Shown in pieces: positions 6,969 to 50,101 of a stretch of 64,000 nt of DNA. The stretch spans positions 124,001-188,000 of the IMG/VR virus record IMGVR_UViG_3300037502_002993. One strand, written 5' to 3'. Within the stretch, counting starts at the first letter, position 1; each line of letters begins with the position of its first letter. The notes under the pieces are model-generated. The model did not search any database, was not told the origin of the DNA, and was given only the letters and a program-made list of their open reading frames with translations. Position numbers and translations under genes: made by a program.

Positions 6969-7009
6969 GACATAAACCGCCCTCCCAACCAGGGAGGGCA
7001 CTTATGCCG
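6969..7009. terminator. Bidirectional hairpin flanked by GACATA/TATGCCG
   Basis: GCCCTCCC-AACCA-GGGAGGGC at a convergent junction. Confidence 0.75.
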
Positions 7010-11597: not shown

Positions 11598-12443
11598 ATG
11601 ACCCAACACACTTTCCGTCAGCTGTACACTGCATTAGAAGAGTTTCGAGAGGTTGGCAATAACGAAACCGTCTCCAACGAAAGTATTCGTCAGTTCCTCA
11701 CTAACCGAGCTCCTAAGTTGGTCTCTTTATTGAGCGATGTGTTCCGCACCCTATCCACTTGGGATTATAGCCAGCCCGAAGTGCTCAATGTGCGTTCGAT
11801 CGAAGGGGTGCTCAGGAAAGCGGATTTCCAGGAGCTTGAAGGGGTGCTGATGATGAAGCCGGTGGGCTTCAATACCAAGCAGGGTCCTCTTGATGTGTAT
11901 GCCCAACAACTGCTTGACAGACAGGTGGACTCTCTGGTATTGACCAAGGATGTCCTGTCTCGTGTACAGGATGTGCTGAGTGGGTACGTGAGTGACCCTG
12001 AGGCACTCAAGGAGAGGGCTAGGGAGCCGCGAGTACTCAAGGAGCAACTCACTGCCCTTGCTCGGTACAAAGAGCGTGAGGCGCCCTGGTTGGTCGAGGG
12101 AAACCGCACCCACGAGGCTGACTTCACCGTCCTGTTCCATAACCTTAAAGCTTTCAGTGAAACCGCACGACTGGTCAATGCCGTGAACGCCAAACGCTGG
12201 TCAGTGGCCCCACCGAAAGAGGTGGCTATGCGCGGCCAATCCCTTAGTCGAGTAGCAGAAGCCCTTCAGCAGATAATGGAAGGGGGCGGTGTAGTGCCTC
12301 ATCGGGATACCCTTCTTCTTCTGGCCAGTGAGATCGAACTCGCTGCGCTTTGGCTTGAATGGTATTCCGTCCTCACTACTCGCATCATGGACCTGACGGC
12401 GGCTATGAAAACCAATGAACGTAAACTCATGAGGGTTCTGTAA
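11598..12443 (+). CDS. Putative virion structural protein
   Basis: ATG 11598 with GAGG SD; divergent from uvsX; stop overlaps the next start (TAATG). Confidence 0.6.
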   Translation: MTQHTFRQLYTALEEFREVGNNETVSNESIRQFLTNRAPKLVSLLSDVFRTLSTWDYSQPEVLNVRSIEGVLRKADFQELEGVLMMKPVGFNTKQGPLDVYAQQLLDRQVDSLVLTKDVLSRVQDVLSGYVSDPEALKERAREPRVLKEQLTALARYKEREAPWLVEGNRTHEADFTVLFHNLKAFSETARLVNAVNAKRWSVAPPKEVAMRGQSLSRVAEALQQIMEGGGVVPHRDTLLLLASEIELAALWLEWYSVLTTRIMDLTAAMKTNERKLMRVL

Positions 12444-13276
12444 TGAGGAATCGTCATTTAAGGGGCACTAGCTCACAGCTGAATCAGTTGAACATGGAGG
12501 CCGGTTCGTTAGCTATTGATACCGAAAAGAACGCTCTGCGCTTCTATGATGGAGAAACCCAAGGCGGGTTTGAGGTGTTAGGCACCCGGGCCTATGAACC
12601 CCCGCCTTTACCAGGGCCTCAAACACTGGTAGGAGGAGACCTCCAGGCGGGGTTCTATGGAGAAACCACTCCTGAGGAGTTCATCTCCTACGGTGCGTTA
12701 AGCACTTTGGTAGGGCTCTCCGCGGGGACCCTCCAGCATGATGCTGAATCCTTCTGGCTGAAGTTCAGTCTCGATGGGTCCCCGCTGTACGTCATGAAGA
12801 AGCCTGCACGACACACGGTGTCGTGGGATCAGCTGCACGCGGCGGGCCTGGTCTTTGGGACCAACACTGTGGAGATTGATGGACTCACCTACCAGGTCCG
12901 CCTCCTCAAAGGGGCCAACTCCGACCCCACCACCGATGCCACGGGCTGGGACATCCCCACCAGCCATGGGTCGGAGTGGAACCGACTCATCTACCCCGTG
13001 CACTCAGGCGTACACACCGACACCCGCAACCCCAGTGTGCACAGTGACCCCACGGCCGCGCCCTTCGGCGCCTGGGCGCAGTACAGTGACGCGGATCTGG
13101 TATTGCGTGGTACCGACAATGGTCGCGCCAACTGGTGTCAGGAAACCCCCGCCACCAGCACCAATCGCGTGCCTCGTGGTGCTTCTGGTGTTACGCGCTT
13201 GGATCGCGCTCCCTCTTCGTTTACGAATTCGACTTACGGTTGGAGAGCGGTACTCGTCCCCATCTTAGACAACTGA
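12443..13276 (+). CDS. Mtd-like receptor-binding protein, paralogue 1 (Mtd_N-like N-terminus plus C-type-lectin/FGE-like C-terminus; DGR-type target)
   Basis: N-terminal LRGT..QL...GSLAIDTEKNALRFYDGETQGG resembles Mtd_N; C-terminal WCQE...RVxRG..G..R......GWRAVL resembles CLec variable proteins. Confidence 0.75.
   Translation: MRNRHLRGTSSQLNQLNMEAGSLAIDTEKNALRFYDGETQGGFEVLGTRAYEPPPLPGPQTLVGGDLQAGFYGETTPEEFISYGALSTLVGLSAGTLQHDAESFWLKFSLDGSPLYVMKKPARHTVSWDQLHAAGLVFGTNTVEIDGLTYQVRLLKGANSDPTTDATGWDIPTSHGSEWNRLIYPVHSGVHTDTRNPSVHSDPTAAPFGAWAQYSDADLVLRGTDNGRANWCQETPATSTNRVPRGASGVTRLDRAPSSFTNSTYGWRAVLVPILDN
13169..13243 (+). repeat. DGR-like variable region VR1
   Basis: Aligns without gaps to 27485..27559 (-) and 48463..48537 (+); 14 of 25 codons identical, 11 vary as NNY. 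Confidence 0.8.
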
Positions 13277-13452
13277 TGGGCACTCACACCGCTCACCGAT
13301 GGAGGCGTGCAGTCCTCGTGCCGGTATAACGCCACCGTCACACGGACCGCCCACCACTGGGGGAGAGCAGTCCTCGTCCCCATCCTAAACGACTGATGAG
13401 CACTCACACCGCTCACCGATGGGGGCGTGCTGTCCTTCAGTTAGTTATCTAA
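13241..13452 (+). repeat. Array of four ~60 bp hairpin units (A-B-A'-C) encoding alternative C-terminal tails
   Basis: Units start TGG at 13241, 13300, 13358 and 13420 and read RAVLVPILDN*, RAVLVPV*, RAVLVPILND* and RAVLQLVI*. Confidence 0.85.
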
Positions 13453-13455
13453 AGT

Positions 13456-13490
13456 GACATAAACCCCTCCCGTAATGGGAGGGGTTCTTT
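13456..13490. terminator. Hairpin terminator
   Basis: AACCCCTCCC-GTAAT-GGGAGGGGTT then CTTT; GACATA on the left. Confidence 0.8.
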
Positions 13491-27175: not shown

Positions 27176-27215
27176 GACATAAAGTCCCCCTCCCACTGTG
27201 GGAGGGGGCTATGCC
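27176..27215. terminator. Bidirectional hairpin flanked by GACATA/TATGCC
   Basis: CCCCCTCCC-ACTGT-GGGAGGGGG at a convergent junction. Confidence 0.8.
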
Positions 27216-27244
27216 ATCATCTATTTTTTCAACGCGTTTCGTCC

Positions 27245-27487
27245 GGGCGTTACCATCCCTCAACGCGTATTCTCATTAGACCACGGGGGTCAAAGCGGCA
27301 CGCCCCCACTGGTGGGCGGTGTGAGTGCCCATCAGTTGTCTAAGATGGGGACGAGTACCGCTCTCCCCCAGTGGTGGGCGGTCCGTGTGACGGTGGCGTT
27401 ATACCGGCACGAGGACTGCACGCCTCCATCGGTGAGCGGTGTGAGTGCCCATCAGTTGTCTAAGATGGGGACGAGTACCGCTCTCCA
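27245..27487 (-). repeat. Array of four hairpin units (A-B-A-D) encoding alternative C-terminal tails
   Basis: On the minus strand A and B are identical to locus 1; the last unit (27276..27308) reads WGRAALTPVV*. Confidence 0.85.
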
Positions 27488-28288
27488 ACCAAAATGCGAA
27501 TTCGTACCCGAAGAGGTACTGCGACCCAAGAACGTAACACCAGAAAGACCACGATGCACGCGCTGGGTGCTGGTGGCGGTGGTTTCTTGACACCAGTTGG
27601 CGCGACCATTGTCGGTACCACGTAATACCAAATCACTGTCACTGTACTGCGCCCAGGCGCCGAAAGGCGCGGCAGTGGGGTCGGTGTGCACCGTGGGGTT
27701 ACTGGTGTCGGTGTGCACACCGGAGTGGATGGGGTACAACAACCGGTTCCACTCCGACCCGTGGCTGGTGGGGAGGTCCCAACCCGTGGCATCGGTGGTG
27801 GGGTCGGAGGCAGCACCGCGCAGCAGGCGGACCTGGTAGGTGAGTCCATCAATCTCCACAGTGTTGGTCCCAAAGACCAGGCCCGCCGCGTGCAACTGGT
27901 CCCACGACACACTGTGTCGTCCCGGTTTCTTCATGACGTACAGCGGGGACCCGTCAAGGGAGAACTTGAGCCACGCCGACTCGGCATCATGTTGCAGGGT
28001 CCCCGCGGAGAGCCCTACTAGGGTACTCAGGGTACCGTAGGAGATCAACTCTTCAGGAGTAGTTTCACCGTAGAACCCCGCCTGGAGGTCTCCTCCAATC
28101 AAGGTTTGGGGACCCGGTCCCGTAAATACCGGCTCATACGCCCTAGTCCCCAGGATTTCAAAACCACCCTGTATGTCGTCGAGGTGAAAGCGTAACGCTT
28201 TCTTCTCTAAATCGACAGCCATCATCCCTTCAGGTAGATTGAGTGTGTTGTTAAAGGCGGTATCGCCATGAGTAAGTTTTGTCTTCAT
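27452..28288 (-). CDS. Mtd-like receptor-binding protein, paralogue 2 (DGR-type target)
   Basis: 278 aa; near-identical core to paralogues 1 and 3; divergent N-terminus; GGAGGA SD. Confidence 0.75.
   Translation of the reverse strand: MKTKLTHGDTAFNNTLNLPEGMMAVDLEKKALRFHLDDIQGGFEILGTRAYEPVFTGPGPQTLIGGDLQAGFYGETTPEELISYGTLSTLVGLSAGTLQHDAESAWLKFSLDGSPLYVMKKPGRHSVSWDQLHAAGLVFGTNTVEIDGLTYQVRLLRGAASDPTTDATGWDLPTSHGSEWNRLLYPIHSGVHTDTSNPTVHTDPTAAPFGAWAQYSDSDLVLRGTDNGRANWCQETTATSTQRVHRGLSGVTFLGRSTSSGTNSHFGWRAVLVPILDN
27485..27559 (-). repeat. DGR-like variable region VR2
   Basis: See VR1 alignment. Confidence 0.8.
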
Positions 28289-33700: not shown

Positions 33701-36700
33701 CAGGAGTGACCCACCCGCGGCACCTGCCGCTGCACCCGCAGCCGCACCCCCAGGACCAGTGAAGAGCTCCTTGATCCGGTTCAGGATGCTCCCACCGGGG
33801 ATCAGTCCCATTAAATCCTCAAGGAAACTGGTGGTTTTCTCCTTCTCTTGCGGGGCGCCCTCTTTATCGCCTTCCTCCTTATCTCCCTTCTCACGTGAGA
33901 ACAGATCCTGCCAAGATCCCCTACGATGCGCCTCAGGTGGGAGTCGACGATCTAGCTTATCCAACATCCGTGACAACAGGCCTTCAGTTGGATTGGAAAA
34001 ACTCTCCTCATCGATCTCCTTCTTCGGGTCTCTTAACCACCGCATCGTTCTTGGTAGTACGCCCTCTTTCTTTGGTTCCTTATCGCGGTCAATATTGAAG
34101 AAGGTCTTGGCCGCCCCCAATGCCTTACCGCCCAACCAACCATAGTAACGTTTCGTCAGGTTCCAATACCCACGCGCCGCGCGGCGACTCCACCGGGAGA
34201 GGAAACTGCGATTCTTACGGATGGGGTGTGGGGTACCTTCCGCGGTAATGGTTTTCTCAATCTCCTCAAAGGAGAGGACTTCATTGCCCTCTTCCGTGAC
34301 CAGAGACCCCTTAATGTCCTCGGGGTTGGTGACAGGCTCCCCCGACTCCCGATCAAAAAATCGTCCTTTAAGGAGATCTGCCATCCTGACACGCGGTCTT
34401 TCTTCCCCTTCAACAAAGATATCCTTTCTCAGGTTATTGAAGGTGTCAACGACCTTATTCTTCACCCGAGTGGCCAGCGGAGCAATGCGCGCTTTCACAG
34501 CCGTAACTTGAGGCGTTTCAGCAAACTGCTCGATATGACGACGAAGTGAACTTACCGTACGGCCTTCATTATCGACCAATCCGTCCTTCCACTCTTGTGC
34601 GGTGATGACGGTATTACCAAACCGGTCTACCACCCGTCCTTTGATATCACCAAACGACTCAATGAGTTTTCCTGTCTCGGCATCAAAATAATGCCCTTCC
34701 TTGAGACGGTGATAGAGGAGTCGGGGATTGCGCAGGTTGTCCTTGGTGAAAAGGTCAGTCTTAAGACGCTCCCACTCCTCACGTCGCTTAGCCCGATCGG
34801 CCCGCCGTTGCATCTCCTGCATGATGCGCTCACGCGCATCATCACTACGGTCTCCCGCTAAATGACCCAAATGGTCAGAGGTACGGTCTGTCCATTTCTC
34901 TTTGAGTCGATCAATTTGAGATTCAGCCTGCTCACGCACTTCTGCCAGCTGCGACTTGACGCCGGATCTTTCCAGCTCGTCATTAATGCGTGCTTTGGTT
35001 TCGTTGACGCGTTGCTGGGCCTTCTCCTTAAACGCGTTGAACCGCTCGACATCCTGAGGACGGTTTTCTTTAAACCATGTCTTAAGGCGATCAGTTTCTT
35101 CCTTGATGTAGTCACTCGTGGTGGGACCCACCTCTTCCGCGTCCTGCTGTGGCGCCCGGTCACCTGCCCCACGGTACATTTCCCAGATGGAGGGGTGGTT
35201 AACAAAGTCCTGACCAATTTCATCACGCACCAAGCCGAGCCCGCGCAGAAGCTCTTGACTGCCAGTTCCGTAGATGCGCTGAATGGCTGCCCTGGAATCA
35301 GGCACCACATCACGCAAACGCAAGAACTCTGAGGAGCTCTCCTGAAGACGACGCATGTTGTCCACATTACGGACCAGCTTGTCCCCTTCATCGAACTCAA
35401 AGCGTTCACGGAAGAACTGCTCCAGTTCATTGAGCGTGTCATCGGGGGTGTCTTTATCGTAACCCCCCCACTGCAGGTACTGCTCAGGATCAAAGCGTCC
35501 ACCCGTGGCACTGTCGCGCATCAAGCGCTCACGCAGGGCGGTACGGGCTTCATCGGAAAGGACGTTCTCAGGATCGTACTGCTGGACAACCCGATCCAGT
35601 TCCCGTCCTACGTTCTCACGCATAGCAGGAGAGAACAGGGTATCTCTCAAGGCATTGCGGGCAGCCCCCTCCCCGGTAAAGCGTCCTGAGGTGATGTCAT
35701 ATACCTCACGCTCCACCGATACATCCCCAGTACGCAGGATGCGCATCTCATGAAGAATGCGTGAGAGGTACCCAGGGATGATCTCCACGATACTGCGTTG
35801 GGTCAGGTGATTAAAAGCACTCTCTTGATCAATCGTGTGGAAGCCCCCATCGGTCAGTTTGCCTTCCAGACCGAAGGTGGGGAATATGTTACGCGCGGCA
35901 TTCTGCAGGATACCCCGCCAGCCATAGCTCTGTTCAGGATCATTGACGTAGTCCTGAATCAGTGAGGGGGCATTGGCAAGGCCGTACGCCAGGAGGTGGT
36001 TACGTCCCCCTAGGCGCTCATTGAGGCGATCAGTATGGGGACGTAGACGATCTCCAAGCTTAGGTGCCAGACGTGACATCGCCCAACTGCTGGCGCCGCT
36101 CCCAGCGAGCATCCCAGCGGTGTTGACCCTATCGCCCATTCCTGCCATGTCTGCCATCATTTCGGCAGAGCTGGCGGAGCTGTCCAGGCCCTGCAGGCCG
36201 CGGGTCATGGCATCGACTAGATTACGGCGTACCTGGGGCCCATAGGTCCTTAAATGGGAGTGCAGGCTCTCACTGGCCATCTGCGAGGCCTGGAGTGTTA
36301 AGGCATGCCCCAAGTGCTCTCTCTTAAAGATCGCATTGCGTCCCGCATTCGGGTCAAAACCACTGCTGCCGATCAGGTCATTAAACTGCTGGGAATCCAG
36401 CACGGTAACGGCATGCTTGCGCTTGGCATGTTCTGGCAGTGATGAGTTATGAATCAGTGATTCAAACGCATTGCGACTCAGTGCTAGTTGAGCGCCGGCT
36501 AGACGACGCATATCCCGCAACATAAACAGGGAGCGGAACTGAAGCTCCAACCCCTTCTTGCCGATCTGGTGACCTACGGTATCCTGATAGGCCACCTGAC
36601 GGTGTTGTGCATTGCGAATGTCGGTAAGGATCTCATGGGTCAGCTCAAAACGACCCGCCTCTACCCGGTCACGAATTCCCTCTTCGACCTTCTCCTGGCT

Positions 36701-37246
36701 ATCGCGCTCTTCTTCACGTCTCTCCTGTTGCACTGACGAAGAGGCATGGAGACTCGCCATCATCTCCGCGAGTTCACTGTTCTCGCGATCTCGCTCTGAT
36801 CCGGTTTGACTGCGGTTGCGATCAATCTGGTACTGGAGGCTCTCCTTACGCCGAGCAATGGCCTGTTCCAACTGGTCATAACGCTTACTGGAGAGTCGAT
36901 CCTTTAGACGGGGAAGCTGGCGTTCAGCCTGCTCTGTGATATTGAGTAAGGATGATGCATTCTCCCGAACGACCTGATCACGAGCCTCTCGCGCAAAGCT
37001 AATGCCCCGACGCCCTTCATCGATTAGGGCATTATACCCATCGGGCAAGGCGCGATCCAGTACCAGGTTCAGAGAGGTCTGTGATTTCACCCCACCTAAG
37101 AATCCACGCTTGAACCCAGCAGTAAACCGCTTCAGTTTAGATTGTTGGGTTTCCCCTCCATCAATATCGAACAGGGCATCGAGATCATCCAGTTCAGGAA
37201 GATCCCAATCATCATTATCCAGCTTATGGTGTTTCTTTGCCATCAC
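30728..37246 (-). CDS. Tail tape measure protein with lytic transglycosylase domain (phiKZ gp181-like)
   Basis: 2172 aa, helical; SLT motif AVAGTESTW...SSALGWFQFIKGTW...YMAHFLG near 31450..31950; divergent from the gp180-like gene. Confidence 0.88.
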   Translation of the reverse strand: MMAKKHHKLDNDDWDLPELDDLDALFDIDGGETQQSKLKRFTAGFKRGFLGGVKSQTSLNLVLDRALPDGYNALIDEGRRGISFAREARDQVVRENASSLLNITEQAERQLPRLKDRLSSKRYDQLEQAIARRKESLQYQIDRNRSQTGSERDRENSELAEMMASLHASSSVQQERREEERDSQEKVEEGIRDRVEAGRFELTHEILTDIRNAQHRQVAYQDTVGHQIGKKGLELQFRSLFMLRDMRRLAGAQLALSRNAFESLIHNSSLPEHAKRKHAVTVLDSQQFNDLIGSSGFDPNAGRNAIFKREHLGHALTLQASQMASESLHSHLRTYGPQVRRNLVDAMTRGLQGLDSSASSAEMMADMAGMGDRVNTAGMLAGSGASSWAMSRLAPKLGDRLRPHTDRLNERLGGRNHLLAYGLANAPSLIQDYVNDPEQSYGWRGILQNAARNIFPTFGLEGKLTDGGFHTIDQESAFNHLTQRSIVEIIPGYLSRILHEMRILRTGDVSVEREVYDITSGRFTGEGAARNALRDTLFSPAMRENVGRELDRVVQQYDPENVLSDEARTALRERLMRDSATGGRFDPEQYLQWGGYDKDTPDDTLNELEQFFRERFEFDEGDKLVRNVDNMRRLQESSSEFLRLRDVVPDSRAAIQRIYGTGSQELLRGLGLVRDEIGQDFVNHPSIWEMYRGAGDRAPQQDAEEVGPTTSDYIKEETDRLKTWFKENRPQDVERFNAFKEKAQQRVNETKARINDELERSGVKSQLAEVREQAESQIDRLKEKWTDRTSDHLGHLAGDRSDDARERIMQEMQRRADRAKRREEWERLKTDLFTKDNLRNPRLLYHRLKEGHYFDAETGKLIESFGDIKGRVVDRFGNTVITAQEWKDGLVDNEGRTVSSLRRHIEQFAETPQVTAVKARIAPLATRVKNKVVDTFNNLRKDIFVEGEERPRVRMADLLKGRFFDRESGEPVTNPEDIKGSLVTEEGNEVLSFEEIEKTITAEGTPHPIRKNRSFLSRWSRRAARGYWNLTKRYYGWLGGKALGAAKTFFNIDRDKEPKKEGVLPRTMRWLRDPKKEIDEESFSNPTEGLLSRMLDKLDRRLPPEAHRRGSWQDLFSREKGDKEEGDKEGAPQEKEKTTSFLEDLMGLIPGGSILNRIKELFTGPGGAAAGAAAGAAGGSLLGRGARALGRGAKWGARNLLMRPAGWALKGGLIAGKGLVATLGWPVVLGAAAATGAFFLGRHLWRRYQSTKGDLQQLRMVQYGFDPDSHSQVKAALSMEAALLEHVRVVDGEVTINTGAINPQHLLEPFGLSVDSEDEAHFEQWNTWAINRFNPVLLAHLNAWKTHSPNSDFHELDTQLDDETMRDYLDDMVRAVGEEPYTFTVDPFGGGNDLTGRDLVQTYLERIRGNLREERRRHQAAAMSPVVAAQAGLTQEEREREQRQRAASRRDTPTVSTATIEASRAINPRDLLTVQGRGGVALPTRDTGYTRLQQLRLRTYGVENLESSLTRAILTIEDELYSRFTWEDGKATYSVSPRHFFEEFGALFGVNRSSRDYRYWAQWLQQRFIPVLADYLTALKSVAPDARPANPEGVLDRFKRAAVARAIFAALEPRSRESVFEAGVDLPGHSGSVAHQQAQILMAHFEAMEQQSSETTSRQELPSSDGSTQSAEASQERARQSVMRRLHESANLQGYQYQPMGSGVRYRSSETPGIGGHVGGFDTNVNPQPHTGRGTGDFVSMEGTGGVWEEIPAPEGEGRQHAAPTLRAVGAMTGIPWEYLFAVAGTESTWRFNVGPDTSSALGWFQFIKGTWTKNGRGVFDRFASKYGIPHPGDENRTLALRRDPRIAALMAAEFTRENYNGLKNALGRALTFSDLYMAHFLGVGGARSFLRALAEDGSRLGTQMFSREAGSNPGVFRKDRGRGAPRTLAEIYEYVNNKIREHLPAGSTAGDFSAQEVPDPNSHQAPAVFGGAGHEAVDLLLTSEEAVGEGDIPDGPAPMNLANLSQSSRDPVTSGYGGTGGGEYTSAEGYDGQTTVSSSGGYGGGAGVSADPVTEARQYREQQARMADVQQRARTQAQEGETHAMGRIAEHQLEVQREMREYLRVIAERFQVGGNTAATAGEEGRQHTNDTSRPSEVTPPANPPRAERTVGQQNPAVNTASRLTALSRDLV

Positions 37247-40756: not shown

Positions 40757-42304
40757 TAAAACTCTACCCTACTGTATAGTTTTTTCAGTAGAGGTAAGTG
40801 ATAATGGGACAACCACTTAAGTATACAACTGAAGATTTTATTGACACAGCTACCATGATGTTCGGTGACCACCTTAGCTACGAGAAAGCCGTTTATAGGG
40901 GTAAACGTCAGCGCCTTATTGTAACATGTACGCACCACGGGGAGTTCGATGTAAACCCACTGGTGTTTCTGATGAGTACCCACGGCTGCGCCAATTGTGC
41001 TAGGGATGAAACAAAAGAACGCTTCATACGTCGTTCTTTGGAACTTCATGGTGATCGTTACGACTATAGTCTCGTTGAAGTGGACGGATATACAGACCCT
41101 GTTACGGTTGTCTGTAAAACCCACGGTGCATTCGAAACATCTATTTACGGACATTCTGTAAGGGGCAATCAGTGTCCTAAATGTTCACGAGAACGCGACC
41201 GTACCTGCCCTAACGAGTGGATTAAAAAAGTTAAGAAGATCCACAAGGGTAAGTACGACTATAGTAAGGCAGTCTACATTCACGGTAAGTTGCCAGTTAC
41301 GATTATCTGTCCGCACCACGGGGAGTTCACCCAGCCAGCACGCTCCCACTACGCGGGACATGGATGTAAGCAGTGTCATATTCAGTTTGTTGCTAGGTCG
41401 AATAAAGAGAGATTTGTTAGGCAGGCCAAAGAAAAACATGGTGTTCAGTATGATTACAGCCGCGTAGTGTTTTTGACGACAAAGGAAAAGGTTGAGATAC
41501 TCTGTCGTAAACACGGACCGTTCTGGGTAACCCCGAACGCGCACGCATCTAGTGGCGCGGGCTGTCCACGCTGCATTGAGTCAAAGGGTGAACGAAGAAT
41601 TAGATTATTCCTAGGGAACCATAAAGTTCGGTTTATTCAGGAATATCGGATCGAACCCTTCAGGTATAGATACGATTTCTTCTTACCTGATTACAACTGC
41701 GTAATAGAACACCATGGTGGTCAGCACTACATGCCTGTTAAACGTTTTGGAGGGGAAAAAGCCTTTAAGCAATGTGTGCAGCGAGATAAGAACAAAAAAC
41801 ACATCGCAAAAAGGAAAGGGATTACTTATCGAGTCACTAACTACAAAATGATGAACAACAGCAAACTCGAAAAGAATTTAACCCGCATCCTTCTAGAACT
41901 CGGTCACTCTCTCGACCACTAACCCATTATTACCTATGGTCCGCTTAAAACCCCCCTAACTGCGGGAACCTGCTAATGATGCTGTTACTACCACTTGTCG
42001 GGGGAAACCCACGGCAACACCCACTCCAGTAATGGAAGTAGTGGGCAGGGTAAAAACGTAACAGCTAGGCACAACCGACGCAACGAAGTCCCTACGTTGG
42101 TCAATCGACCAATATGGGATGTGTTCAGAGGCCATCGAAAACTACAGCTTGTTTAATGCAAGCCTAATGACACAGGTATAGAACCCTGTGGTCTCCACGG
42201 AGATTAAAGTGAGTAGAGTAGCTGATTTCTATATCGGCGAAACGGGGGGCTTCTGTTTGCTATTCACGAACCAGAAGAAGATATGGTCCAATTTGAATTG
42301 ATTG
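40757..42304 (+). mobile_element. Group I intron (1548 nt) carrying a homing endonuclease in the P1 loop
   Basis: Exon ends in U and intron ends in G. Core elements P (AACTGCGGGAA), Q (ACCGACGCAAC), R (GTTCAGAGGCCAT) and S (AAGATATGGTCC) are present. IGS GTCCGC at 41939..41944 pairs with exon GCGGAT. Confidence 0.88.
40804..41922 (+). CDS. Intron-encoded homing endonuclease: four DUF723-like Cys/His repeats plus C-terminal Vsr/DUF559-like (EDxHD-type) nuclease
   Basis: Repeats Y..V.Y......V.I.C..HG.F...P..H..G..CP.C; C-terminal ESKGERRI...YDFFLP...IEHHGGQH; visibly more AT-rich than the flanks. Confidence 0.8.
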   Translation: MGQPLKYTTEDFIDTATMMFGDHLSYEKAVYRGKRQRLIVTCTHHGEFDVNPLVFLMSTHGCANCARDETKERFIRRSLELHGDRYDYSLVEVDGYTDPVTVVCKTHGAFETSIYGHSVRGNQCPKCSRERDRTCPNEWIKKVKKIHKGKYDYSKAVYIHGKLPVTIICPHHGEFTQPARSHYAGHGCKQCHIQFVARSNKERFVRQAKEKHGVQYDYSRVVFLTTKEKVEILCRKHGPFWVTPNAHASSGAGCPRCIESKGERRIRLFLGNHKVRFIQEYRIEPFRYRYDFFLPDYNCVIEHHGGQHYMPVKRFGGEKAFKQCVQRDKNKKHIAKRKGITYRVTNYKMMNNSKLEKNLTRILLELGHSLDH

Positions 42305-43743
42305 CTTCCAATTCGTAAGATCTCTCCAAGCAGGGTTGCTCTCACCTCTTACTATAATAAAACGTTTGTCGACCGCTCTTCTCGCTCTACGAATAACTTT
42401 GCTCAATGGGTCACACGCCAAATGACCCAGATCGGACTTGATCCGGATAACGACCAGATCACTAACCTGAAGTTAGGTAATGCGTTTGATCAGTCCATTG
42501 AAGTGCCAAGGGTTTACTCCTTGCTCTCAGCGCGCTTTACGCAATTTGCCGTAGGGCCACTACAGTTCTACTTGAGCTACCATAAACGAGCTGCTCATTT
42601 TGAACAACATGGGATACGGGTAGAACAGGTAGAGAAAGAAGGGCGAACGGTAATCGGGATGGATCGTGAGTCATTAAGTCCCATCACGGTAGATGCCAGT
42701 GACACTTTCTATCTGGGCGATGAGCCCTTAGGTACTCTGTGTCAGGTAGTGGGACTTCCCGAAGCCAAAGCACCGCTGGATATCGCGGAGGTAGGGGTTT
42801 CCAATAAGGTCATCCCGGTGGGGTTGGTGCTGGCTTACCAGATGGGGCTGTCTAAACTCATCGAGAAACTTAATTGTGATGTGGCCAGACACCGACGGGG
42901 CAGTCGGTTTGAAATGGCCGATGATGAGTACAGTGTGGTCTTTCAGGATGAGGTGCTTGTCTTCTCGCGGTTGGATCGACGGGCCTCACTGGTGTTGGCG
43001 GGACTGAATCGCTATCACCGCGCCCTACGGCAATTCAGTGTCTGGGACTTTGATCGTAAAGACGTCTACCACAACGTCCTTCTGGATCAGGGCCTTGGGG
43101 TGCGCTACCTGCGGGAAATCGATACCCTCTTTAATGTCTGGGTTGATCCCATCACAAAAGGACTCCTGGAGGAGATGGGGGAACCCACTGACTTTGGAGG
43201 ACTGCTCCTCAGAAGTGCTGACCTACTGCTACACGACCACGCTCCCAATGAGGTAGAAGGGGAGTACATGCGCTATCGGGGGTATGAGCGCATGGCAGGG
43301 ATGGTCTATGGGGAGCTGGCGAGGGCCTGCAAAGCCTATCACGCGCGCAGTCACTACGGTGATGCTGCAGTGGATCTAAATCCCCACCAGGTGTGGCAGC
43401 GCATTGTGGGTGACCCCTCATCCATGATCGTGGAGGAAGCCAACCCCTTTACGGTGGTCAATGAACAGGAAATCATGACCTATCGTGGAGATGGCGGTCG
43501 TAGTGGTAAGTCCATGGTGAAGCGGACGCGTATCTACTCTGACACTGATGTCGGGGTAGTGAGTGAATCCACCCTAGATTCGGGAGATGTCGGGGTAGTG
43601 GCGTACCTGGCCCCTGATGCGAACTTCACCTCCACTCGGGGATTGACCCGACGTTACGATAAAAGTAAGGATGGCGCAGCAACCCTCCTATCCACTGCTG
43701 CACTCAATGCCCCTTGTGCGGACAGAGATGACGCCAAGAGAAT
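42305..43743 (+). CDS. rpoB: Virion RNAP beta subunit, exon 2
   Basis: LPIRKISP...SESTLDSGDVG...ADRDDAKR-AT; continues exon 1 in frame after splicing. Confidence 0.85.
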
Positions 43744-44203
43744 CCGATAAGTTGGTTCCCCCAGCAGGTAACTGTTGGGTAAACACTCCTCTAATTGCTG
43801 GGACCTCTCGTAAGACCTTAGGTACGATCCCGTTCCGAAAGGAAGCCATGGATAGCCGGGCCTGTAAGAATCCTAAGGATAGAGACAACCATGCAGCGAA
43901 GTCCCTAAGCCTACTCAACGAGTAGGGATGGGATGTGTTCATCGACTATCGAAAGGCGCCCATTAGGGCGAACTGAGTAGAGTAGGGCCAAGCGGTAGGC
44001 CGCTAACGTGGAATGGCGTTAGTTATAAGTCCTTTAAACCGAAACGGGGAGCTTCCTACTTGTTAAGAGAGGAAGAAGATATAGTCAGTCCTTTAGCGAG
44101 AGTTAAAGGTAACCATGGAGTGGTTAGCTCGATCTAGCGAATCGGGTTTGGAAAGGGAAGGAGGATTTCACCCAATTAGGGTGATCTTCATCTGTGTACA
44201 GCG
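43744..44203 (+). ncRNA. Group I intron (460 nt), no endonuclease ORF
   Basis: P (AATTGCTGGGA), Q (CCATGCAGCG), R (GTTCATCGACTAT) and S (AAGATATAGTC); removal restores DDAKR-I-NFISVQ; exon GAAU pairs with GUUC at 43755..43758. Confidence 0.88.
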
Positions 44204-45332
44204 CAACTTTATCTCAGTGCAAGCAAGACAGGGCATTTGGGCGGAAGGGTATACGGTCACGCCACTAAGGACGGGGTATGAACAGGTACTGGCCTCACGG
44301 GTAACAGATCTGTTCGCGACCATGGCACAGCAAGATGGGAAGGTTACGTCAGTGGAAGAGAATTCCATTGTGGTGACCTATAAGGATGGGACGCAGGAGA
44401 AGGTCCTTCTTGGGAAGCGCTACGGTAAAGCCGCTGGGTATACCTACCCACAGACCTTGGTAACGGATCTAAAGGTAGGGGATAAGGTTAAGTCAGGTGG
44501 GGTGATTGCGTATAATCGTAACTATTTCATGCCTGATACCTTTAATCCCGGTCATGTGGTATTGAAAGCGGGGGTAATGTGTAAGGTGGCCCTGATGGAC
44601 CCCATCGATGCTTTGGAAGATGGGTCTGTTATCTCTGAGGAGATCGCCAAGCAGTTCACCACGCAAACCAGTGAGGTCAGGACCCTGCAAGCGCGTTTTG
44701 ATCAGTCTGTCAGGGACCTAGTGAAAGTCGGCGATCATGTGGACTTGGATTCCATTCTATGCATTATTGAAGACCCGGAGATCCGCGATAATCCCCTGTT
44801 CAATGACATTGCCATGGATACCTTAAGAAAGCTCTCTTCCCACACCCCACGAGCAAAAGTGACAGGGGTGGTGAGCCGAGTTGAGGTGTTCTATCATGGT
44901 GAGTTTGAGGACATGTCAGAGTCCCTTCAAGGTGTGGCGGGTCAATCCAATCGTCGTCGCCGTCAAGAGGCCAAGGCCTCAGGGCAGCCCGCTTTCGATG
45001 GTCAGGTGGATACGGGCTTTCGTATCCGTGGGGCCGCCCTTGATCCGGATAGCGTGGCCATTCAGGTGACCATTGATCATGACGTGGGGGTAACTGCGGG
45101 GGATAAGTTGGTGTACGCCAGCCAGCTGAAGTCCGTCATTTCTCGTGTCATGACGGGTCGTAATGAAACCGAAAGCGGTGAAGCCATCGATGCCCTCTTT
45201 GGTAACACCTCTGTGGAGGATCGGATGGTGTTGTCCCCCAAACTCATGGGCACCACCAATACCCTACTCCGGGTCCTTTCCCAACATATCGCATCTGTCT
45301 ATCGAGGACGTAGTGATGTCAAGAGACCGTAA
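44204..45332 (+). CDS. rpoB: Virion RNAP beta subunit, exon 3
   Basis: NFISVQ...LRTGYE...EDGSVISE...GDKLVYASQLKSVI (GDK motif of beta). Confidence 0.85.
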
Positions 45333-45528: not shown

Positions 45529-47001
45529 ATGCTGTCACCCTGTACTATCCATAATGCCCGTCAGGTAGCCACCTCACTGACGGAAGCCAAACGTGAAGCC
45601 CGCGCTAAATCCAGCCACTACCCACTAGGGCAGTTGACCGACCGCCTTGAAGTCGGGGCCCCGATGCTCAAGCGCAGTGTGAACTATGAGGGGTATGAAA
45701 AACTCACCCAGCGTTTTAAAGAAGTCAATGAGGTGACCAGTGCGCAGAGCGAAGAGTTCTTTCGTGATCTGGTGAAGGTGACCAGTGACGGGGTGAACAA
45801 CATGCTCCACCTGTCGCGTAATGTGGTGGTTCCGCTGATCAAGCGCTGCGCGCAAGATGTTCAGTACTACTTTGAGGACCGCCATCCGGAACTCAAAATC
45901 CAGCCGGTCTCACTGACCCCCTTGTTGCAGTCTGACGTCCTGCTGCAGCACCTTCAGGATTATCCAAAACAATACGGGGTTAAGGAAGAGTACAAGACCT
46001 TTATCCTGGCACCCCCCACCATTGAGCAACTGCGCGAATGGGCCGCCCAGACCCCGCACATTGAGAGTGATCTCATCAAGCGCTGGCTTGGGAAGGTGGA
46101 GGATGAGGATCTGCTTGGGGTATTCAGTACCCTCTTCAATGACAAACGCGTACTGAATGTGGACGACCTTTACTTTGCGCGTCCCCACACTCTGGTATGG
46201 CATGCCGATCTCCTGCTCTTTGCCTACTTCCTGACCAGCTACCTGCGGGATAACCCCCAGGACACCGTTGATGATGGAGCCAGTCTTGCAGAGTGGGAAA
46301 CCGCACTGGGAGACCTTCACGGTTATATGGGTCTGCGCCTGATTGAGCTTAATGAGCGCCGGGCTCGTCTGAAACGCGAAGGGCGCCTGGTCCTGAATTA
46401 TGATGATCGGGTAGCGGGTGATGGCATGCATGTGTACATCAACCCCGATCTGGTGGATGAGTGGCAGGCCAAAGGGGGCACCGCTGGCATGTTGCTGGCG
46501 GCGGGTTACGTCGACCCCATGCTGACCCGCATCGATGCACTCATGGCAGAGAAGGACGCCCTGGAGGCCTTTTGGGCACGCAAACACAAAGCCCTGAAGA
46601 TGCATTCCAACGCCGCCAATAAAGCCAATCGTCGTGGTCACTATCGCATGATCATGGAAACCACGTCAGGTGATGGGGAAGACGGTCTCCCTAAGGTGGG
46701 GCATGACGTGTGGAAGGAGCGTCTTAACGACTCCCTGGCAGCGCTCTCTGAAGATGACATGGAGAAGCCCTATTACGCCATCACGGAGTTGGTGTGTGAC
46801 TGCTACTTTCCTGGAACGGCCATTAAGGACTTCCTGAGGACCATGGAACGTTGTGGGGTGGATATCCATGCCCGTGAAGCAGCTACATTCGCTACCGTTG
46901 AGGTACTCGCCTCCTGGATGGCAGAGCAGATCAAGGTGGAGGCGGTTGAGCTTGACCTTGCAGGGGAAGAGAACGGCAAGCAAGTGCTCGCCAACGCTTA
47001 A
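45529..47001 (+). CDS. Conserved phiKZ-like hypothetical / virion protein
   Basis: 490 aa in the operon between gp178-like and gp175-like genes. Confidence 0.6.
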   Translation: MLSPCTIHNARQVATSLTEAKREARAKSSHYPLGQLTDRLEVGAPMLKRSVNYEGYEKLTQRFKEVNEVTSAQSEEFFRDLVKVTSDGVNNMLHLSRNVVVPLIKRCAQDVQYYFEDRHPELKIQPVSLTPLLQSDVLLQHLQDYPKQYGVKEEYKTFILAPPTIEQLREWAAQTPHIESDLIKRWLGKVEDEDLLGVFSTLFNDKRVLNVDDLYFARPHTLVWHADLLLFAYFLTSYLRDNPQDTVDDGASLAEWETALGDLHGYMGLRLIELNERRARLKREGRLVLNYDDRVAGDGMHVYINPDLVDEWQAKGGTAGMLLAAGYVDPMLTRIDALMAEKDALEAFWARKHKALKMHSNAANKANRRGHYRMIMETTSGDGEDGLPKVGHDVWKERLNDSLAALSEDDMEKPYYAITELVCDCYFPGTAIKDFLRTMERCGVDIHAREAATFATVEVLASWMAEQIKVEAVELDLAGEENGKQVLANA

Positions 47002-47015
47002 TGGGAGTGTGACCG

Positions 47016-47738
47016 ATGGATGTGACCACCCTAGTGCGTGATCCGGATTATATCACACGCCACCTGGTCGTAACTGATGGGGGTGGGGTGGTCACTCGCC
47101 GCCCCACCAAGATCATGATTCCTGAACGCTACGCTGAACGCCATCTCGCCTCCCTAGGGGGCGAGACGTATATTCTCGGACTGTTTGGGATCATTATGGA
47201 TGAGAAGTACTATGGGGTTTCCTTTGTGAACGCCATGGTGCGCATTACCCCAAGCTCCACCACCACAGTAGATGTTGGCGGAGATGCCTATTTGGAGTTT
47301 TCATTTGAACCAGGGGACCAGGTCATCTATAGTTTAGACCTGGTGAAGAACGACATTCTGACCTTTTACATCTACGATGAACATGTGGCGAAGGGCAGAA
47401 TCCCTTGGTACATGAATTACCTAGATCTGGCCTATCTGTTTGACAGCGCCAAAGAGCATGCTGGGATGAACTTGGGTAACCGTGCTGTATTGGAGCTGAT
47501 GCTCTCCACCATTGCCCGCGACTCCAATAATGTCGGGGCGTTGTATCGCCACATCATGCAGGGTCTCACTTACGTTTACCAAATCCCCCCGAAATGGATA
47601 CCATTTAGAAGCGTGATCTGGAACACCAGTGATACCACGAGTAAATTGATCGGGGGGTATTTCAGTGATGCCGTAACGTCAGCCCTGGTCAACCCTAGTG
47701 AGCGGGTAGAGCGGATTGAGGGACTTTTGAGGACGTGA
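47016..47738 (+). CDS. Conserved phiKZ-like virion structural protein
   Basis: 240 aa; GGAG SD; context. Confidence 0.6.
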   Translation: MDVTTLVRDPDYITRHLVVTDGGGVVTRRPTKIMIPERYAERHLASLGGETYILGLFGIIMDEKYYGVSFVNAMVRITPSSTTTVDVGGDAYLEFSFEPGDQVIYSLDLVKNDILTFYIYDEHVAKGRIPWYMNYLDLAYLFDSAKEHAGMNLGNRAVLELMLSTIARDSNNVGALYRHIMQGLTYVYQIPPKWIPFRSVIWNTSDTTSKLIGGYFSDAVTSALVNPSERVERIEGLLRT

Positions 47739-47739
47739 T

Positions 47740-48561
47740 ATGAAAACACGCTATTTGAGGGGCACTCGTGCACAGTTAAATGCCCTAAATCTCCCTGAGG
47801 GGAATTTAGCTATTGATGTAGAAACCAAGGCTTTACGGTTCTTTGATGGAGAAACCCAAGGCGGCTTTGAGGTCCTGGGAACACGGGCCTATGAGCCCTC
47901 ACCTCCTGGACCCACTGAGTTAATTGCGGGTGATTTAACCACTGGTTTTTATGGCGAGGTGGGGCCTGAGGAGTTCATCACCTACGGTGCCCTGAGTACC
48001 TTGGTTGGGTTGAGTGCGGGGACCCTCCAGCATGATGCTGAATCCCTCTGGCTGAAGTTCTCCCTCGATGGGTCCCCGCTGTACGTCATGAAGAAGCCTG
48101 CACGACACACGGTGTCGTGGGATCAGCTGCACGCAGCGGGCCTGGTCTTTGGGACCAACACGGTGGAGGTCCAAGGACTCACCTACCAGGTCCGCCTGCT
48201 GCGCGGTGCTGCCTCCGACCCCACCACCGATGACATCGGCTTCGACATCCCCACCAGTCATGGGTCGGAGTGGAACCGGTTACTGTACCCCATCCACAGT
48301 GGGGTCCACACCAACACCAATAACCCCACGGTGCACACTGACCCCACTGCTGCGCCTTTTGGGAGCTGGGCACAGTACAGTGACAGTGATTTGGTATTAC
48401 GTGATACCGACAATGGTCGCCTCACCTGGTGTCAAGAAACCGCCGCCACCAGCACCCAGCGCGTGTATCGTGGTAATCCTGGTGTTACGACCTTGTTTCG
48501 CAATACCTCTTCGACTACGCGTTCGGATGTCGGTTGGAGAGCAGTCCTCGTGCCGGTATAA
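47740..48561 (+). CDS. Mtd-like receptor-binding protein, paralogue 3 (DGR-type target)
   Basis: 273 aa; same core; ends with the B-type tail RAVLVPV*. Confidence 0.75.
   Translation: MKTRYLRGTRAQLNALNLPEGNLAIDVETKALRFFDGETQGGFEVLGTRAYEPSPPGPTELIAGDLTTGFYGEVGPEEFITYGALSTLVGLSAGTLQHDAESLWLKFSLDGSPLYVMKKPARHTVSWDQLHAAGLVFGTNTVEVQGLTYQVRLLRGAASDPTTDDIGFDIPTSHGSEWNRLLYPIHSGVHTNTNNPTVHTDPTAAPFGSWAQYSDSDLVLRDTDNGRLTWCQETAATSTQRVYRGNPGVTTLFRNTSSTTRSDVGWRAVLVPV
48463..48537 (+). repeat. DGR-like variable region VR3
   Basis: See VR1 alignment. Confidence 0.8.
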
Positions 48562-48716
48562 CGTCACCGTCACACGGACCACTCACCAGTCCGGGAGAGC
48601 GGCGTGAGTGCCCATCAGTTATCTAAGATGGGGACGAGTGCCGCTCACCAGTGGGGGCGTGCCGCATCGGGTCACTGGCGTGCCCCGCGTAAGCGTGGGG
48701 TCCCTGTGACCTGTTA
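48535..48716 (+). repeat. Hairpin unit array (B - inverted A - Y)
   Basis: 48597..48646 is the reverse complement of unit A (47/50 identical). Confidence 0.85.
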
Positions 48717-48798
48717 ACATCAACAACCACCGTAGGGGGTGGTCGAGGACTCAAGTGACGCCTTGATCCGGCCACCCTGCTCTTTGGGAGACTTGGTA

Positions 48799-49566
48799 AT
48801 GTCTATTCAGAAAAGCCCAGTGATGGGCTGTACGATGTTAGTGGGGACGACCAAGAAAGGTATCCTCGCTCCAGATGCCGACGGTTATTACCGTGTGGTA
48901 CTCGGCGCTTATGGTGCGTATAACAGCGTTAACATGTTTTACGATCTCGATTCCGCCAAGCTTCTTTTCCAGTCCGGTTCCCCTTTGATGCGGATGTTGG
49001 AGAAAGGGGTATTGCGTGGAGAGTACAAGCACCCCGAGATGGAACGGGGGATGACAGAAGCTGAGTACATTCGCCGCATTCGTCAGATCGATGCGGATCG
49101 TGTCTCCCACCATATCCGTAAGGTGTGGTTGGAGGGGGGACATAGCGATGAGAAGGGTCGTCCGGTGACGCTGGTCATGGGAGAGGTCAAACCCGATACC
49201 GAGTGCGAACACGGACGTAGACTGAAGGCCGCACTGGACAACCCCCATGAGAACGTCTACTTCTCAGTGCGTTCACTGACTATGGACGACATGATGCGGG
49301 GAATTAAGTACACCCGTGAGATTGTCACTTGGGACTACGTCAACGAGGGGGGTATCTACAGTGCCAACAAGTACAACAGTCCGTCACTGGAAAGCTTCAC
49401 TGAAGTCCGTCTGACGCAAGAGATGGTTTATCAAGCAGTGGCGATGGAACCCAAGGCCGTTGGTATGGAGAGCGCTGACACCACCTGGAGGGGGTTGATC
49501 CAGGAGATGGGGTGGGAGTTATCTCCCTGTAATGCCCCTGAGGTGCCGAACTATACGCAATGGTAA
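48799..49566 (+). CDS. Prohead maturation protease (phiKZ gp175-like)
   Basis: LRGEYKHP (His), RVSHHI, YFSVRS (Ser), VTWDYVNEGGI; GGAG SD. Confidence 0.85.
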   Translation: MSIQKSPVMGCTMLVGTTKKGILAPDADGYYRVVLGAYGAYNSVNMFYDLDSAKLLFQSGSPLMRMLEKGVLRGEYKHPEMERGMTEAEYIRRIRQIDADRVSHHIRKVWLEGGHSDEKGRPVTLVMGEVKPDTECEHGRRLKAALDNPHENVYFSVRSLTMDDMMRGIKYTREIVTWDYVNEGGIYSANKYNSPSLESFTEVRLTQEMVYQAVAMEPKAVGMESADTTWRGLIQEMGWELSPCNAPEVPNYTQW

Positions 49567-49580
49567 ACAAAAAAGAAAGC

Positions 49581-49620
49581 GACATAGTTGCCCTCCCGTA
49601 ATGGGAGGGCGGTTATGCCG
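49581..49620. terminator. Bidirectional hairpin flanked by GACATA/TATGCCG
   Basis: GCCCTCCC-GTAAT-GGGAGGGC at a convergent junction. Confidence 0.8.
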
Positions 49621-49630
49621 GAGTTTGCAG

Positions 49631-50101
49631 TTAATGGAAGGTAAAGGTCCACTCACCACGGTTAGAGTTCACATCCACTTCCAAGATGTCCGTAGGACGA
49701 CACCCGGTATTGACTCCCACCTTCTGGCCGAAGTTAAGAGAGATACCGCCGTTGATGGGGACTGTTTCACAGTTACCGCGATTAACCACCACGCCAGTAA
49801 CGACCAGATCATCCGTGGCGGATTGGATGTTCACCGTAGCAAAGTTCATGGAGACGGGGTGGTGGGTCAGTTCTATCCGAAACCCAGGGGAGTCGTAAAC
49901 CTGTGGGATGGGCTCAGCTCCTCCCAGTTCCGCCTCACACTCTTCTTGGGTCATGCGCCAATCCATCATGGCAGCGGTATCGGGGTCAATGCCCCGGGCA
50001 TCAAACTTATCGGCCACACAGTCCATCACGGTGGAGGCGTGGGTGGTAACTGAGAACAGCGAGAGCAGAGCCACAGATGCGAGCGTAATGAATGTTTTCA
50101 T
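49631..50101 (-). CDS. Exported protein with signal peptide
   Basis: MKTFITLASVALLSLFSVTTHA signal peptide; four Cys; beta-rich C-terminus (VNRGNC). Confidence 0.65.
   Translation of the reverse strand: MKTFITLASVALLSLFSVTTHASTVMDCVADKFDARGIDPDTAAMMDWRMTQEECEAELGGAEPIPQVYDSPGFRIELTHHPVSMNFATVNIQSATDDLVVTGVVVNRGNCETVPINGGISLNFGQKVGVNTGCRPTDILEVDVNSNRGEWTFTFH

Follow-up and report, generated by a model that had tools for sequence, protein, structure and literature searches.

Palindromic modules are stacked at the ends of several Mtd-like genes of a phiKZ-like jumbo phage (220.6 kb), and at one of these ends, locus 3, the interior of a hairpin unit (unit A) is inverted relative to its gene. The account that we consider probable combines the stacking of modules at the ends of the variable repeats (VRs) of a diversity-generating retroelement (DGR), a one-time, non-programmed inversion of the interior of unit A at locus 3, and a DGR that is now defunct. 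The inversion event itself is ordinary. It lies in a phiKZ-like jumbo phage whose multi-target DGR has decayed and whose VRs are bordered by stacks of palindromic gene-end modules; the position of unit A, at the 3' edge of the DGR variable repeats, was absent from the first-pass annotation of this DNA. This setting outweighs the inversion. The VRs are frozen, and their 3' boundaries have been remodelled by the stacked modules.

Mtd-like paralogs and the remains of a DGR

The DNA stretch analyzed here (the window, 64,000 nt) spans 124001-188000 of a viral genome that measures 220,598 bp and has direct terminal repeats. Signs of a phiKZ-like phage are a Peptidase_S80 prohead protease (48739-49566) and homologues that include PhiPA3 and other phiKZ-like phages. 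The genome encodes five close Mtd-like paralogs of about 275 aa, three within the window (W1, W2, and W3, at loci 1, 2, and 3) and two outside it (X4 and P5), as well as four further, more distant paralogs. Homologues of the paralogs contain the Pfam domain Mtd_N, and a PDB search with the profile of the paralog family had Bordetella phage Mtd as its sole match. An AlphaFold (AF2) model of a paralog (pLDDT 91.6) returned Mtd (E 1e-4), Treponema TvpA, and formylglycine-generating enzymes (FGE) as the best folds in Foldseek. From these results together, the paralogs are predicted to be Mtd-like receptor-binding proteins with the C-type-lectin fold of DGR variable proteins and the VR at the C-terminus.

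In all five close paralogs the VR comprises the last ~25 codons before a GGTTGG motif, with hypervariable NNY codons and no adenine in the invariant columns. As template repeat (TR) we used that of L010, a contig of 601 nt that stems from a different sample and belongs to a close relative; there an avd (accessory variability determinant) gene 95% identical to the one in this genome is directly followed by the TR. We compared 69 aligned bases of this TR with the five VRs. Sites with a TR adenine varied among the paralogs in 16 out of 17 cases, against 5 out of 52 sites with another base (Fisher p=1.6e-10); three of these five variable non-adenine sites fall in one codon. By this signature, the last ~25 codons of the paralogs are DGR variable repeats.

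The genome retains an avd-like gene (L006:8688-9035(-)) that matches bAvd at 1.5e-5 and 23S_rRNA_IVP at 2e-4, in both cases below the gathering score, and only a ~28-nt remnant of its own TR after this gene. We found neither an RVT_1 match at E<=1 nor a plausible YxDD ORF for a reverse transcriptase (RT) in the 220.6-kb genome, and a DUF4376 gene occupies the place expected for the RT. A full DGR in this genome was ruled out because both the RT and an intact TR are absent, and the DGR is defunct, a decayed or orphan system. The lineage thus gained a DGR and spread its target over five scattered Mtd-like paralogs, after which the RT was lost in this genome.

Searching with the W1 protein, we found PhiPA3 (L001) as the sole related locus. 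The PhiPA3 homologue extends past the GWRP motif without modules, and an RT was also not found in the PhiPA3 genome. Called genes of phiKZ-like contigs with Mtd-like homologues (L002-L004, L009, L012-L014) gave no RT match, and inspection of the gene ends in L002 and L003 showed that modules are absent. The Mtd-like gene of the syntenic relative L009 adjoins the DUF1353-muramidase-fibre genes, and between them there is no called gene matching avd or RT. In a limited literature search (DGRs with jumbo phages or phiKZ), no report of a phiKZ-like phage with a DGR came up. IMG/VR was scanned for exact patterns of unit A, of the avd-TR junction, and of the VR skeleton without a match, and a scan of GTDB genomes for the VR skeleton did not yield one either.

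Behind X4 and P5 lies a conserved non-coding block of ~95 nt (L006:9100-9185(-) and L007:4100-4195(+)), which contains a small GGCCT-TTC-AGGCC hairpin followed by a GGGACCC...GGGTCCC stem. A 1434-nt contig (L005, from JGI 3300035670) combines a W2-like gene body (98%) with the VR and canonical end of P5 and the avd gene found downstream of X4 (100%). Either the assembly is chimeric across the ~95-nt repeat common to P5 and X4, or the contig represents a recombinant strain with a module-free, avd-adjacent target.

Elsewhere in the window, ORF 65-1573 contains three tandem 183-nt repeats (469-1017; 77% and 63% identity to the first) and terminates in a Peptidase_S74 intramolecular chaperone domain, so that it probably encodes a tail fibre or spike. 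An Rfam group I catalytic intron (43734-44108; 78 bits, E 3.5e-18) lies between ORFs 42302-43750 and 44115-45332, which have no Pfam match and are probably a single split gene. A minus-strand ORF of 2172 aa (30728-37246) had no Pfam match either.

Stacked palindromic modules at the gene ends

The homology between TR and VR extends through GGTTGGCGTGCCGCTCT, and P5 ends with an uninterrupted GGTTGGCGTGCCGCTCT that is identical to the TR. In W1, W2, W3, and X4, modules sit between the final GGTTGG of the VR and the TR-homologous CGTGCCGC. These modules, A and B, are related palindromic units of ~60 nt of which one to three are stacked per array, in the order A-B-A' in W1, A-B-A in W2, A-B in X4, and B-A, with A inverted, in W3. 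Each array is followed by TGG-GGG-CGTGC(C/T)G(C/T), where the last part reads CGTGCCGC in W2, W3, and X4 and CGTGCTGT in W1; the tail of X4 is identical to the TR end at 14 of 15 bases. The positions of the features are given in Table 1.

Table 1. Paralogs, modules, and associated features (window positions unless marked as genome positions)
Feature	Position	Strand	Description
Paralog W1	12443..13276	(+)	277 aa; VR about 13166-13243
Unit A, locus 1	13245..13294	(+)	forward, reference copy; fold -10.5 kcal/mol, z -4.25
Unit B, locus 1	13303..13363	(+)	non-coding at locus 1
Unit A', locus 1	13365..13414	(+)	forward; 6 differences from A; hairpin decayed
Paralog W2	27452..28288	(-)	278 aa
Unit A first copy, locus 2	27434..27483	(-)	forward relative to W2
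Unit B, locus 2	27365..27425	(-)	
Unit A second copy, locus 2	27314..27363	(-)	forward, one stem mismatch; then tail CGTGCCGC at 27295-27302
Paralog W3	47740..48561	(+)	predicted Mtd-like receptor-binding protein, C-type-lectin fold, 273 aa
DGR-type VR of W3	48460..48537	(+)	terminal GGTTGG at 48532-48537
Unit B, locus 3	48538..48595	(+)	5' arm encodes RAVLVPV and stop TAA (48559-48561); 3' arm partly complementary to 5' arm
Unit A, locus 3	48597..48646	(-)	50-nt interrupted hairpin, interior inverted relative to gene, non-coding; DNA fold -15.1 kcal/mol, z -5.5
Tail after locus 3 array	48647..48665	(+)	ACCAGTGG-GGG-CGTGCCGC; displaced TR-homologous GC-rich VR end
Avd-like gene and TR remnant	genome 114560-115035 (L006:8560-9035)	minus	directly after X4; then ~28-nt TR remnant, DUF4376 gene

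Each module begins with codons for R-A-V-L-V-P and a stop, continues with a partly complementary arm, and ends in CACCNNTGG. The 5' arms of A and B both encode RAVLVP and differ by five synonymous and no non-synonymous codon changes. Because all these differences are synonymous, we conclude that A and B have each served as a true gene end. The current gene end is formed by A in W1, W2, and X4 and by B in W3; the W1 stop codon TGA (13274-13276) lies at the junction of the terminal loop of unit A with the 3' arm of its inner stem. Because the A-B period measures exactly 120 nt, the reading frame remains open for 39 codons beyond this TGA (13274-13396) and closes with another WGRAVLVPILND-stop; this could be a coincidence (with odds of about 1 in 6) or could permit a read-through extension. 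All four paralogs with modules use AGA for the Arg that follows GGTTGG, where the TR and P5 use CGT (13241-13249, 27479-27487, 48535-48543), a synonymous recoding by which W-R-A is retained and GC-rich TR-homologous sequence is removed. Terminator-like hairpins of the form CCCTCCC-N4-GGGAGGG recur behind several genes (13455-13480, 27195-27222, 49590-49614, and 6975-7009).

Copies of unit A were found only behind four paralogs in the genome. For orthologous loci we used relatives of the protease, of which the nearest complete one (L011) is only 73% identical. At the same locus L011 has an A-type coding end, WRPLLIPID-stop, without the complementary arm, suggesting that the palindrome is a recent innovation of the close lineage. 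A collection search for near-identity with 47000-50000 of the window had no match; the single match of a JGI metagenome scan for unit A (L008) was rejected as a chance match in unrelated AT-rich DNA.

Two related strains differ at this protease-adjacent locus. In a freshwater strain 48579-48640 is missing and B is the only unit; in a sludge strain the only unit is of type A, in forward orientation. Between strains, units are therefore gained and lost, at direct repeats of 19 nt on either side of A, and a simple flip-flop was not observed. A and B probably came to be stacked between GGTTGG and the displaced CGTGCCGC through unequal recombination or gene conversion between paralogs at the short repeats CACCNNTGG. 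The B-A-tail of locus 3 corresponds to the last two modules of locus 2.

Inversion of the interior of unit A at locus 3

The first-pass annotation had reported an inverted unit A at 48597-48646, matching 13245-13294 at 47 of 50 positions. Direct reading of both 50-mers confirmed this match; the reverse complement carries three substitutions, 7 (T>C), 26 (C>T), and 44 (A>G). Allowing at most three mismatches, the 50-mer has four matches in the window, at 13245(+), 27314(-), 27434(-), and 48597(-), while the chance expectation was 0 (100 shuffles). A decayed fifth copy is found at 13365-13414 and a sixth outside the window at genome position 115260-115309(-). All copies have the orientation of the adjacent gene except the one at locus 3, which is opposite.

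We then aligned locus 3 with each version of the B-A-tail of locus 2 in which one segment is inverted. Allowing such a segment increased the score of the alignment from 68 to 102, and eight best solutions tied, all of them with both breakpoints in the outer stem of 7 bp, GAGCGGT/ACCGC(C/T)C. The array at locus 3 is colinear with the B-A-tail of locus 2 with the exception of the 36-nt interior of A, which is flipped, and the flanks of the inverted segment keep the forward orientation. These results agree with the earlier proposal that the breakpoints lie inside the inverted repeat. Inversion in situ gives about 88% identity over 48566-48650 (counted from the alignment), compared with 79% for an inverted copy of the whole array, which we rejected. 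Because W3 already terminates at the TAA inside unit B, upstream of the inverted unit A, the latter is non-coding. The statement that an inverted unit would encode only RAA* is therefore correct for a hypothetical unit placed directly after GGTTGG and does not apply to locus 3, where the gene stops earlier.

Unit A has a predicted outer stem of 7 bp (5 of 7 pairs G-C) enclosing 36 nt, in which an inner 6-bp stem is set off by 7x7 internal loops and closed by a terminal loop of 10 nt, TTAGACAACT. A distance of 1-2 nt separates it from GGTTGG, and in the canonical paralog this place is taken by TR-homologous sequence. Folded as single-stranded DNA, five of the six copies were more stable than shuffled sequences (z -2.9 to -5.5), the inverted one having the stem of highest stability. 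The hairpin is lost in A' (-4.1 kcal/mol, z -0.9), and unit B and the small hairpin of P5 fold no better than shuffles.

Positions 7 and 44 indeed pair in the predicted hairpin, forming the innermost pair of the outer stem, and T-A is replaced by C-G at locus 3. The annotation had taken this exchange as a sign of selection on the hairpin. This is unproven: among the six copies, one double change (pair 7/44) stands against three single changes that break the stem, the A' copy is unfolded, and in a covariation test on these six copies 135 of 500 shuffles scored as well. A single covarying pair is no proof of selection on structure, and because the copies of unit A are 97% identical, their conservation says little. 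The better-than-shuffle folding of five of six copies, together with the most stable stem in the inverted one, is compatible with some selection for structure. The C-G pair can be explained without selection, since template switching can invert the spacer and copy one arm from the other.

Polymerase template switching between the arms of short inverted repeats is documented; it inverts the spacer and homogenises the arms, resulting in apparent compensatory changes (PMC8794818, PMC8604942). At locus 3 the inverted segment is bounded exactly by short inverted repeats with unaltered flanks, and the change from T-A to C-G at the innermost stem pair fits arm homogenisation, although six copies are too few to order the events. 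From this geometry we infer that the 36-nt interior of A may have been inverted once, through replication template switching or through recombination across its own 7-bp stem, as both would leave a similar geometry. The same event could have rewritten one stem arm from the other and so given rise to the C-G pair. Lying in non-coding DNA past the stop codon, the inversion leaves the protein unchanged, and it does not appear to be a programmed switch.

Orientation was assessed in assembled contigs of public runs, of which run X1 is the deepest; such contigs drop minor variants. An X1 contig of 8566 nt from an independent assembler, which may share the source sample of the window, matches 48448-49300 with 0 differences at single-copy depth. 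Within this limit of assembled contigs, locus 3 has a single orientation in X1 at full single-copy depth. A joint in X1 between 48541 and 48597 on opposite strands (depth 320, about 3-4 copies) was read as cross-mapping of paralog contigs and not as flipping, as was the loose end at 48602, although the X2 loose end is ambiguous.

Alternative explanations and known systems

In the Bordetella phage BPP-1, a hairpin or cruciform after the VR is needed for retrohoming, for which the structure of the stem and not its sequence is required (Guo et al. 2011, PMC3240598). Elements of this type have a GC-rich stem of 7-10 bp and a 4-nt GRNA loop and are located 4-34 bp after the VR; function was lost when the GAAA loop was replaced by CTTT or made larger (PMC3240598). 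A and B might likewise be DNA hairpins or cruciforms for DGR retrohoming, kept for their structure and tolerant of orientation, with a stem pair altered by true compensatory mutation. We regard this as unlikely, even though unit A is in the right place, just past the last VR hexamer, has a 7-bp outer stem rich in G-C pairs, and folds better than shuffles in five copies. Differing sequences (A, B, and the small hairpin of P5) also occupy the same place in different paralogs and, with post-VR hairpins functional in the BPP-1 DGR, a role in the active past of this DGR is possible. However, the 36-nt interior and 10-nt terminal loop of unit A depart from the 4-nt GRNA loop, the hairpins of B and P5 fold like shuffles, the covariation is not significant, and there is no RT here. 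Moreover, the modules split the VR from its TR-homologous end, an arrangement expected to impair homing. Because of the loop and this split, we do not class unit A as a BPP-1-type hairpin. Like that element, unit A is immediately 3' of the VR in an Mtd-like gene, has a GC-rich 7-bp stem, and travels with paralogous targets. Unlike it, unit A is a larger interrupted palindrome without a GRNA loop, overlaps the last codons, comes in one to three stacked copies, and is inserted inside the TR-homologous end instead of after it, in a genome from which the RT is absent.

It is improbable, in our view, that the units act as RNA stem-loops in the 3'-UTR that would stabilize the mRNA of the receptor-binding genes, in which case only the stems would matter and the orientation would be free. 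Whole 3' regions are predicted to fold as RNA with -99 and -105 kcal/mol (z about -4), and at loci 1 and 2 the real terminator hairpins come only after the arrays, which themselves follow the stop codon. Against this, RNA stability follows automatically from DNA palindromes, A' is decayed, and there is no conservation outside the close lineage. No Rfam family matched at the units, the sole Rfam match elsewhere being the group I intron. An intrinsic terminator role of the unit was ruled out because there is no T-tract.

Equally doubtful is the idea that the modules form an undescribed control layer of multi-target DGRs, which would uncouple the VR from mutagenic homing and thereby 'lock' receptor specificity. 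If this were true, four of the five paralogs would be locked, the paralog with an uninterrupted GGTTGGCGTGCCGC end would stay diversifiable, and gain or loss of modules or inversion of the hairpin would reset which targets are open. Any effect of the modules on retrohoming would have a bearing on how DGRs choose and limit their targets.

The annotation had also proposed that the hairpin is a substrate for site-specific inversion or template switching. The latter fits, given the 36-nt interior bounded by a 7-bp inverted repeat; the former is unsupported, and a programmed, recombinase-driven element that toggles the gene end is very improbable. The breakpoints are precise and within an inverted repeat, and a flip of the VR-proximal unit would turn the C-terminus ..RAVLVPILDN into ..RAA. 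Yet the sole inverted copy is the distal, non-coding unit past the stop, the repeats measure only 7 bp, and the deep sample has one orientation among its contigs. We detected no Resolvase/invertase (PF00239), tyrosine recombinase (PF00589 Phage_integrase), or Y1 transposase (Y1_Tnp) in the genome, although a host enzyme is possible. Neither a promoter-like site nor, on the strand of the gene, a terminator-like one is present in the inverted unit; strain differences consist of gain or loss of units and not of a simple flip. Known invertible DNA switches include the G segment of Mu with Gin, Cin of P1, Hin, fimS, and the shufflons. The phage resembles these in that the orientation of a segment beside a host-range gene differs between copies, and is unlike them in having neither a recombinase nor long crossover sites; its inverted copy holds no coding or promoter sequence, and nothing in the contigs points to two states in one population.

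An assembly artefact due to the repeated units can practically be dismissed as the source of the inversion. The region is rich in repeats, and contigs from short reads end around the locus, but 48448-49300 was recovered at single-copy depth and without any difference by a second assembler, and three private substitutions in the locus 3 copy make its k-mers unique.

The REP/BIME palindromic units of enterobacteria and the REPIN-RAYT systems are characterized by dispersed intergenic copies and a RAYT transposase. The modules are similar to REP/BIME in being imperfect palindromes at gene 3' ends that occur in tandem, in both orientations, and with mosaic linkers. They differ from REP and REPIN-RAYT in that they are found only behind four paralogs and are not dispersed, have a coding 5' arm, and are not accompanied by a RAYT/Y1 transposase.

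A one-off inversion of the template-switch type, in a stack of modules at the end of a VR, thus remains our preferred explanation for locus 3. As in published template-switch inversions (Monttinen & Loytynoja 2022, PMC8794818; PMC8604942), a 7-bp inverted repeat bounds an exactly inverted interior with no recombinase needed, and the arms are perfectly complementary afterwards, with a 'compensatory' pair change alongside. Unlike in those cases, the interior of unit A is structured and has 36 nt, compared with the usual loops of 4-8 nt, and the unit is part of a stack of repeated modules at a DGR target. The 'minute inversions' at chloroplast hairpins are a further parallel. Considered apart from its setting, the flipped hairpin clearly illustrates how an inversion of the template-switch type, with a 'compensatory' change linked to it, looks in nature.
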